From positions 62,001 through 126,000 of the IMG/VR virus record IMGVR_UViG_3300034072_000758: a stretch of 64,000 nucleotides of DNA, one strand, 5' to 3'. Below, in pieces: positions 55,291-55,363 of the stretch. A program made the translations under genes and the position numbers. The notes beneath the pieces were generated by a model. The model saw only the letters and a program-made list of their open reading frames with translations, had not been told where the DNA came from and did not search any database. Each line of letters begins with the position of its first letter. Positions within the stretch are counted from its first letter, which is position 1.

Positions 55291-55363
55291 GGGCTTTTAG
55301 CTCAGTGGTTAGAGCGGGAGACTCTAAATCTCCGCGTCGTGGGTTCGAATCCCACATTGCCCG
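55291..55363 (+). tRNA. Amber suppressor tRNA, anticodon CTA (Lys(CTT)-like body); CCA not encoded
   Basis: D-arm GCTC-AGTGGTTA-GAGC; anticodon arm GGAGA-CT[CTA]AA-TCTCC (anticodon 55324-55326); T-arm GTGGG-TTCGAAT-CCCAC; acceptor GGGCTTT/ATTGCCC with two T-T mismatches; discriminator G. Confidence 0.85.

Follow-up and report, generated by a model that had tools for sequence, protein, structure and literature searches.

Conserved in-frame TAG codons in two genes beside an amber-suppressor tRNA of a standard-code jumbo phage

Why should a phage that ends genes at TAG encode a tRNA whose anticodon reads TAG? The question is raised by a stretch of 64,000 nt, bases 62001–126000 of the IMG/VR virus record IMGVR_UViG_3300034072_000758 (516,805 bp, direct terminal repeats, 45% GC), which we call the window; positions refer to it unless another sequence is named. 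At 55291–55363 the window carries a tRNA gene with the anticodon CUA. We consider it probable that this phage tRNA functions as an amber suppressor dedicated to one task, namely readthrough of TAG codons placed in two adjacent genes, one for a protein resembling peptidyl-tRNA hydrolase 2 (Pth2) and one for a predicted HD-motif phosphohydrolase. The elements on which this reading turns are the following.

55291–55363, + strand: tRNA with anticodon CUA (amber suppressor), from ARAGORN, Rfam, direct reading and an independent assembly.
55551–55571, + strand: leader of the Pth2-like gene, consisting of the Shine–Dalgarno (SD) motif GGAG (55551–55554), 8 nt, GTG (55563), CGT and TAG (55569–55571), in frame with ATG 55572; from direct reading, and homologous to the leader in L059, a related metagenome contig.
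55572–55961, + strand: predicted Pth2-fold peptidyl-tRNA hydrolase homologue, 129 amino acids (aa) from its ATG; from Pfam, an AlphaFold2 (AF2) model and Foldseek.
56652–57209, + strand: predicted HD-motif phosphohydrolase gene of 185 codons with an in-frame TAG at 56802–56804 (codon 51, CCT CCT TAG ATG); from homologue alignment and an AF2 model.

ARAGORN places the tRNA at 55291–55364 with anticodon cta, and Rfam matches the full length of model RF00005 at 63.4 bits (gathering score 29, E 2e-11). Both agree with the preliminary description of this DNA, made from its letters alone, which had read a canonical cloverleaf with a CTA anticodon; CTA occupies 55324–55326 in a 7-nt loop, CU-CUA-AA. 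The two acceptor-stem mismatches reported there were recovered as U5-U68 and U6-U67 between the strands GGGCUUU and AUUGCCC, and Rfam flags exactly two non-standard pairs, both in the acceptor stem. The discriminator is G, at 55363, and since CGTGG follows it, no CCA is encoded, again as described; most other tRNAs of this phage do encode CCA. On direct reading the core is intact (U8, A14, G18G19, T-loop UUCGAAU, U33, A37 and the G15-C48 partners). We rejected the label “Pyl” that ARAGORN attaches to the gene. The architecture of tRNA-Pyl is atypical, with a short D loop, a 3-nt variable loop and a long anticodon stem, whereas the window tRNA has an 8-nt D loop, a 5-bp anticodon stem, a 4–5-nt variable loop and a standard T loop; because this architecture is ordinary, the label reflects the anticodon alone.

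The source run was also assembled independently in Logan (word depth 81.6); that assembly is identical to the window over 54600–56600, and because the two match without difference the CTA is unlikely to be an assembly slip. The same phage occurs in three other runs at low depth, and the source run alone covers the anticodon. One earlier hint is not supported, that the anticodon context lies one base from that of tRNA-Lys(CTT): the phage’s own tRNA-Lys(CUU) genes are identical to it at only 52–53 of 74 bases. Its body is nearest to tRNA-Phe genes, its anticodon arm is also found in unrelated phage suppressors, and it resembles the tRNA-Sup genes of the phages fHe-Yen9-04 and XacN1. It is the single CUA tRNA among 57 tRNA genes genome-wide, which together cover all 20 amino acids. 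Together with one tRNA-Met 2.3 kb upstream it is separated from the main tRNA arrays by >200 kb; the Pth2-like gene follows it directly, at 0.2 kb, and the HD gene lies 1.3 kb downstream. A promoter scan upstream of it found no convincing sigma-70 promoter.

The phage uses the standard code, and TAG stays a terminator genome-wide. Coding density over the whole genome peaks at 0.918 under code 11 and drops to 0.909 if TAG is taken as sense, and a greedy set of open reading frames (ORFs) stops at TAA in 388 cases, TGA in 272 and TAG in 94, which makes TAG the rarest stop at ~12% of ORFs. The TAG of the RlaP nucleotidyltransferase gene was rejected as a readthrough site, as it falls exactly where the homologues end. 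Because density is best under code 11, TAG ends many ORFs and the RlaP stop matches its homologues, genome-wide recoding is absent. The preliminary description had drawn the same conclusion from five ORFs ending at 815, 2020, 9746, 14273 and 51731, all of which do end in TAG.

Candidate targets of the suppressor were sought genome-wide, as coding stretches that lack a start codon after a TAG, as SD-start-TAG leaders, or as ORF pairs bridged by a TAG in which either half has coding potential. The genome scan gave no excess of start-less stretches after TAG, and no gene of the genome besides the Pth2-like gene has an SD-start-TAG leader. Eleven TAG-bridged ORF pairs were found, the HD gene among them, and only the HD gene survived testing. 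Nine of the ten others were run against Pfam and three of these also by tblastn, while the pair at 398939–399550 was tested only as part of the pair L127. The bridge L122 was rejected as an antisense frame of a serine-protease gene, L125 as lacking homologues, and L130 as two conventional genes, an SD overlapping the stop between them; the remaining pairs, the RlaP one apart, had no Pfam match.

The Pth2-like gene begins GGAG, 8 nt, GTG CGT TAG ATG CCT GAA, and its 129-aa product is a predicted Pth2-fold peptidyl-tRNA hydrolase homologue. Pfam PTH2 (PF01981) matches the window protein at E 2.7e-4 and 21.6 bits, below the cut-off of 23, and the model finds 14 of the 29 family members at E ≤ 0.01, the best at 1e-6; the family’s profile in PHROG, 34073, is only 77 positions long. 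In the AF2 model (predicted local distance difference test, pLDDT, 86) the top 13 Foldseek matches in the PDB are all Pth2, with TM 0.57–0.75 and probability 1.0, and the protein carries a Q..Q..HA helix and D-x-G-x-T-like motifs. Fold and motif types are thus those of archaeal and eukaryotic Pth2 (PDB 3ERJ, 1Q7S, 2ZV3, 1XTY), from which the phage protein differs in its borderline sequence similarity and the phage gene in its amber leader, a feature not described before.

The HD gene starts at ATG 56652, and the ORF as called (56805–57209) represents only the 134 aa that follow its TAG. The two pieces form one gene interrupted by TAG, because homologues span the stop, their alignment crosses its column and invariant residues lie before it. 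The joined query finds 389 homologues, mostly of 170–195 aa, with 95–100% of the query covered, and the alignment runs unbroken across the TAG column, where the residues are L, Q, S, E and K. Across 49 HD sequences H24, G25, H76-D77, H97, D125 and H129 are invariant, and H24 and G25 precede the TAG. No SD stands before ATG 56805, the first codon after it. The joined protein is modelled by AF2 with a pLDDT of 97. Its best structural match is residues 250–443 of the class II CC-adding enzyme 3WFR (Z 15, 158 residues, root-mean-square deviation 2.6 Å), followed by the HD domains of PPX/GppA, PhnZ, PgpH and YfbR at Z 9–11, in a range of middling scores that is common for a helical model. The matched part is the C-terminal half of 3WFR, whose tail domain contacts the tRNA elbow. 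The phage protein differs in standing alone, at 185 aa and without a nucleotidyltransferase head, and tRNA binding or end-healing by it is suggested from the fold only. It shares the conserved H...HD...H...D...H motif with HD phosphohydrolases, although it matched no Pfam family, the HD family included. Sequence searches against solved structures returned chance matches only for both proteins.

We collected a first set of loci by scanning IMG/VR with the HD family (61 loci; 58 unique with the window and L059 added) and a second with the Pth2-like family (70 unique loci). Over ~100 jumbo-phage loci, those of cultured phages among them, the Pth2-like gene almost always opens with a start codon, 0–7 codons and TAG, in most cases with a purine next, and as a rule a tRNA(CUA) is found on the same strand at a distance of at most 5–6 kb. 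The closest relative of the locus is L059, a 5.6-kb NCBI metagenome contig with the same order: tRNA(CUA), 47 nt, an SD, then ATG AAT ACG CAA CGT TAG ACT leading into the Pth2-like core, with TAG as codon 6. Its HD gene has the identical CCT CCT TAG ATG, and the HD proteins of window and L059 are 54% identical before the TAG (by eye) and 68% after it. The annotation of L059 omits the Pth2-like gene entirely. In G001 and G002 (355–358 kb) and L033 (a 97-kb fragment) the Pth2-like protein is 54–57% identical to that of the window, and the leaders read ATG GCT CAC TAG AAT and ATG CGA TCG TAG ATC.

In 43 loci of the first set a Pth2-like gene immediately precedes the HD gene. The first in-frame stop within 10 codons upstream of its core is TAG in 38 of the 43, TGA in one and TAA in none, and the leader follows a pattern of SD, ATG, 0–7 codons and TAG. 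Among the HD genes, 13 distinct sequences have an internal TAG, at three different positions, and 21 have a TAG in an N-terminal leader. L059, L060 and L063 share the window’s HD column; in L060 and L063 the TAG, at the “DLPP” column, is followed by ATT or ATC and by no start codon for 14–19 codons. Eight RaK2-like sequences have the TAG at “ELDTG*GD”, with no start codon for 16–70 codons. Overall, the start-less gap after the TAG is 14–70 codons at 9 of the 13 internal HD sites and 0–6 codons at the other four, which include the window and L059; in Pth2-like genes it reaches 95 codons. These conserved in-frame TAGs in the Pth2-like and HD genes support the local or partial readthrough without recoding that the preliminary description had proposed.

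The amber codons also go together with CUA tRNAs. In the first set, 35 loci combine a cassette amber codon with a CUA tRNA, 10 have the amber codon alone, 4 the tRNA alone and 9 neither (Fisher p 0.003); after grouping at 60% HD identity into 31 clusters the counts are 15, 6, 2 and 8 (Fisher p 0.018). In the second set a TAG leader occurs in 57 of 70 loci, and in 47 of these 57 between one and three CUA tRNAs lie on the same strand no more than 5 kb away. A more telling case is L103 (5396–5662), where a UCA (opal) suppressor lies 180 nt upstream of a Pth2-like leader that reads ATG GAA TCG TGA. In L179, which carries a UUA tRNA, the Pth2-like gene simply starts at an ATG. Amber suppression in E. 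coli is helped by a purine 3′ of the codon, and a purine follows the TAG at all 34 HD and all 32 Pth2 sites of the first set and in all but three leaders of the second (rows read by eye), compared with 41 of the 85 TAG stops that end other genes in this genome.

Among 46 suppressors that are otherwise diverse the anticodon loop CUCUAAA hardly varies, which points to selection on decoding. Acceptor mismatches, to which the preliminary description ascribed a possibly deliberate weakness of the tRNA, are not commoner in suppressors (6/46) than in other phage tRNAs (34/302). Those at pairs 4–6 recur in suppressors of related cassettes, including those of cultured RaK2-like phages, and for this reason we take the mismatches of the window tRNA to be real. 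Typing by nearest neighbour with the anticodon masked (44 CUA tRNAs against 379 phage tRNAs) gave no consistent isotype for the CUA tRNAs: Thr 10, Arg 9, Lys 7, Phe 5 and others, the window tRNA falling nearest to Phe. G73 together with G1-C72, G2-C71, G3-C70 and G10 of the window tRNA would, we assume, suit GlnRS by E. coli rules. Beside the cassettes of L178, L187, L197 and others the CUA tRNAs number two or three, and the discriminator is often A in one of them and G in another, which hints at suppressors of different identity.

The same arrangement lies concealed in cultured phages. By tblastn the Pth2-like gene occurs in 36 phage records, whose carriers include GAP32, CBB, BF, the Erwinia pEa_SNUABM phages, ME3, Arash, RsoM2USA, XacN1, Xoo-sp13, RaK2 and K64-1. 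In Yersinia phage fHe-Yen9-04 (cassette L121, LT960551.1 289112–290016) it sits inside an unannotated 338-bp gap, its frame lacks any start codon past the TAG, the HD gene has been split into two annotated hypotheticals, g408 and g409, and the tRNA-Sup-CTA lies 2.5 kb downstream of the HD gene. The leader of RsoM2USA reads ATG TTG TAG ATT and that of Arash (L153/L236, OQ632216.1) ATG CTG TAG AAC; in Arash the CUA tRNA is annotated as tRNA-Phe and the “peptidyl-tRNA hydrolase” gp84c as a 50-aa stub. XacN1 has ATG AAG TAG ACC ahead of a single ORF (ORF364) that fuses the HD and Pth2-like parts (L150:334–1203; AP018399.1 ~243726–244595), and the annotated start is an ATG four codons past the TAG. 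The Pth2-like gene of RaK2 has a plain ATG start. The pattern amounts to a systematic annotation error, in which gene callers miss amber-leader genes and leave them hidden or mis-split in the public records of cultured phages.

Several observations weigh against a suppressor dedicated to these two genes. G001 (complete, 358 kb; the genome of L031/L074) has TAG in both genes and a CUA tRNA nowhere, and at 308022–308097, the slot in which its sister G002 has the suppressor, it has an unrelated tRNA-Arg(CCG). More broadly, 10 of the 45 amber-bearing loci lack a CUA tRNA within 6 kb. The loci are related to one another and the counts overstate their independence; because of this, and because flanks of 5–6 kb can miss a tRNA, the association figures are supportive rather than decisive. 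The covariation with an opal suppressor is a single case, L103, where GTG follows the TGA. The two U-U mismatches of the window tRNA might impair its processing, charging or binding to EF-Tu, and a GG start with an unstable acceptor stem is the trigger for CCACCA tagging. The discriminators of the 46 suppressors are A in 31, G in 13 and U in 2, and their acceptor stems vary widely, so that neither a single suppressor identity nor an inserted residue can be derived from them. Finally, in the window an ATG follows each TAG, and re-initiation could suffice, without any tRNA, to make the Pth2-like protein and an HD protein in two pieces.

This last point leads to the account in which the TAGs are real stops: the leaders would be upstream mini-ORFs acting in coupling or re-initiation, the HD gene would make two polypeptides, and the CUA tRNA would lie nearby because the location is rich in tRNA genes and would serve another purpose. 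The ATGs just mentioned, the one after the HD TAG of L059, the persistence of both TAGs in G001 and the abundance of tRNA genes at many cassette loci all suit it, yet we judge it improbable. Most lineages have no ATG, GTG or TTG for 6–95 codons past the TAG even though the conserved core starts 0–9 codons past it, the codon after the TAG is usually a non-start (AAC, AAT, ACC, ATT, GTT or GGC), and the fHe-Yen9-04 frame offers no start whatever. A plain coupling stop would have no need of the 38:0:1 preference for TAG over TAA and TGA, the one phage with a UCA suppressor has a TGA leader, and the window suppressor adjoins the cassette, away from the main tRNA arrays. A code with TAG reassigned (as in code 15), either genome-wide or in a large late-gene block, would account for the suppressor and for the rarity of TAG as a stop, but it has next to no chance of being right given the coding densities, the normal frequency of start-less stretches after TAG, the confinement of the leader to the Pth2-like gene, the HD gene as the only bridged pair to survive and the position of the RlaP stop.

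The remaining alternatives concern the tRNA itself. It might act mainly in counter-defence, as a decoy or replacement against nucleases that attack the anticodon or the acceptor end, with CUA decoding of little weight; tRNAs of phage T5 reportedly rescue attack by PARIS or retrons. The unusual acceptor stem, the four acceptor-arm mimics that follow the tRNA (described below), the RNA-repair genes of the genome (RlaP, cREC_REC) and neighbours that resemble tRNA-end enzymes would all fit, the more so as Iyer et al. (2021) tie phage PTH2 to rescue after tRNA cleavage. This role would leave the conservation of TAG in the neighbours and the switch to TGA with a UCA tRNA unexplained, and the near-invariant loop of 46 diverse suppressors speaks against it as the only role; we therefore regard it as unlikely by itself, while noting that counter-defence and decoding are compatible with each other. 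Decay, finally, would make the tRNA non-functional, through a private anticodon mutation or crippled by the U-U pairs, and its TAG-bearing neighbours pseudogenes. Two adjacent mismatches and a missing CCA in a phage whose tRNAs mostly encode it could be so read, and a single-sequence fold does not recover the full cloverleaf. We find this very unlikely all the same: the core tertiary positions are all intact and the Rfam score is high, mismatches at pairs 4–6 recur in cultured RaK2-like suppressors, a CUA tRNA accompanies an in-frame TAG in cultured phages as well as in 15 of 31 divergent clusters, and between window and L059 both sides of the HD protein’s TAG are conserved.

How, then, would a gene-specific suppressor work here? 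In the sequence of events that we infer, the tRNA would be transcribed and cut out, with RNase P cleaving at the 5′ side of the first downstream minihelix to leave G73 plus one C and so form the tRNA 3′ end. CCA would be completed by the host enzyme or by the class II tRNA nucleotidyltransferase that the phage encodes, and a host synthetase would charge the tRNA. Ribosomes would start the Pth2-like gene at the SD-GTG (55563) and reach UAG at codon 3; in the HD gene they would meet it at codon 51. There the charged suppressor would compete with release factor 1 (RF1), full-length protein being made only if the suppressor wins, while RF1 would still end other genes at TAG. Because output would depend on the mRNA of each gene and on a mature, charged suppressor together, the arrangement would form a coherent feed-forward (AND) gate, which could damp leaky or premature expression. 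The Pth2-like protein may partly escape the gate in the window because an ATG follows its leader TAG. The HD protein would need readthrough, since the invariant H24 precedes its TAG and a re-initiated fragment would lack it. A TAG within the first codons or in a variable HD loop suggests that the inserted residue is unimportant, which fits the diverse stems and discriminators of the suppressors.

Both clients look like tRNA 3′-end enzymes, and for this reason tight dosage control, or feedback through tRNA status, seems the likeliest purpose of gating. One may go further, tentatively and with doubt prevailing, and suppose that the cassette is a self-regulating quality-control circuit for tRNA 3′ ends: the suppressor would report tRNA integrity, CCA and charging, and readthrough would dose a Pth2-type esterase and an HD phosphohydrolase. 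Feedback would then run through the substrate class itself, since the clients would clean tRNA 3′ ends, and the four minihelix-CCA RNAs downstream of the tRNA would serve this system as additional substrates or as decoys. Full TAG recoding could even have such cassettes as its evolutionary seed. The minigenes of lambda bar load cells with peptidyl-tRNA. The leader, with its start, few codons and stop, recalls them by analogy and may be sensitive to peptidyl-tRNA hydrolase or to RF1.

In the literature that we searched, a cassette of suppressor and client genes appears undescribed. CUA (or UCA) tRNAs are known from the standard-code genomes of XacN1, RsoM2USA, Atu_ph07 and fHe-Yen9-04, which resemble the window phage in this respect. 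The XacN1 paper found no target genes for its two CUA suppressors, and the Atu_ph07 and RsoM2USA papers only remark that the stop codon is common. None of the papers on these phages identified targets, whereas the client genes proposed here are present in XacN1, RsoM2USA and fHe-Yen9-04. Iyer et al. (2021), in reporting PTH2 in jumbo phages, suggested ribosome rescue after tRNA cleavage and did not mention amber codons. Genome-scale recoding, of TAG to Gln or TGA to Trp, has been described in crAss-like, Lak, Agate and other phages (Borges et al. preprint; jumbo-phage survey). There too a phage suppressor reads in-frame stops and an expression switch has been proposed, but tens to hundreds of genes, structural and lysis genes among them, are recoded and density collapses under code 11; the window phage has the standard code and only two adjacent non-structural genes with TAG, mostly within the first few codons. 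An engineered feed-forward “leak dampener” built on a suppressor tRNA (PMC7969014) is alike in placing amber codons in the target and co-expressing the suppressor, with output needing both. That circuit is artificial, whereas the phage cassette is natural, conserved and tied to putative tRNA-end enzymes, its co-transcription being assumed.

Our reading of the tRNA as a dedicated suppressor thus proposes conserved targets for suppressor tRNAs long reported as target-less in standard-code jumbo phages, and would provide a natural example of gene-specific gating by suppression in bacteria–phage systems. It would tie together phage translation take-over, tRNA repair and rescue enzymes, and early stop-codon reassignment. 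Carriers that can be cultured exist among phages of Salmonella, Yersinia, Cronobacter, Serratia, Xanthomonas and Ralstonia.

The tRNA is itself framed by hairpins, one upstream and four downstream.

55252–55290 (hairpin ~55256–55285), + strand: upstream hairpin with a GUAA loop and a ~12-bp stem, then AGCUAA without a CCA tail; by folding, −13 kcal/mol, z −3.3.
55365–55399, + strand: minihelix 1, 13 bp with one bulge, GUAA loop, ACCA; begins 1 nt past the tRNA; −22.2 kcal/mol, z −5.3.
55407–55442, + strand: minihelix 2, 13 bp with one mismatch, GUAA loop, ACCA; U at −1; −25.5 kcal/mol.
55460–55494, + strand: minihelix 3, 12 bp with one mismatch, GUAAU loop, GCCA; U at −1; −21.8 kcal/mol.
55506–55539, + strand: minihelix 4, 12 bp without mismatch, 6-nt loop, GCCA; U at −1; −23.2 kcal/mol.

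The preliminary description had credited the flanking minihelices with encoded CCA, which is right for the four downstream, each ending in ACCA or GCCA, and wrong for the upstream hairpin. In a genome-wide scan minihelices 1–4 are the four most stable hairpin+NCCA motifs (−20 to −24 kcal/mol, against −17.5 for the next best). The minimal substrate of RNase P and the CCA enzyme is an acceptor stem stacked on a T stem, 12 bp with a 3′ RCCA. All four open with a G-C pair and fit this description (~12-bp coaxial stem, G1-C72, 3′ RCCA), and they look like such minihelix substrates in having 12–13 bp, a 3′ ACCA or GCCA and, in three of them, U at −1. They differ in having GNRA-like tetraloops and no T loops, and in standing in tandem in a phage 5′ untranslated region. 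Related cassettes contain no such minihelices, except for two tandem hairpin-NCCA elements in L104. These (L104:8013–8114, with GCCA and ACCA) come right behind a sigma-70-like site, TTGACA-17-TATTGT, ~1.2 kb from the CUA tRNA of that locus. Within the window’s array, a frame of 37 codons starts at ATG 55458 and continues in phase to the leader TAG and the ATG of the Pth2-like gene; this is probably chance, and less likely a longer leader.

Other genes bear on RNA and translation. Besides the class II tRNA nucleotidyltransferase, the phage has genes for an RNA-repair nucleotidyltransferase of the RlaP type and for a receiver domain (cREC_REC) that processes cyclic phosphates; a further ORF of 191 aa contains an RF-1 domain and may be a rescue factor similar to ArfB. 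Their positions in the whole record are listed jointly.

G000:C1:471918–472934, 411463–412062, 34857–35216, 293391–293696: RlaP, cREC_REC, class II tRNA nucleotidyltransferase and RF-1-domain genes.

The serine-protease gene at 48578–49468 (+) occurs also in Caulobacter phiCbK-like phages, a hint of an alphaproteobacterial host. The TAG-bridged ORF antisense to it (48584–49297, −) is conserved only as its opposite strand and stands as a caution for readthrough scans. The lone tRNA(CAU) lies at 52924–52995, 2.3 kb upstream of the suppressor, and the nearby ORFs 53083–53604 and 50502–51731 match, listed jointly, DUF4326 and a nucleoside 2-deoxyribosyltransferase-like family. Two small paralogous ORFs complete the neighbourhood of the cassette.

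55967–56368, + strand: small ORF of 133 aa, phrog_26018 (unknown function), a paralogue of 57215–57595; its L059 homologue sits between the Pth2-like and HD genes.
57215–57595, + strand: second small ORF of the phrog_26018 family, 126 aa.

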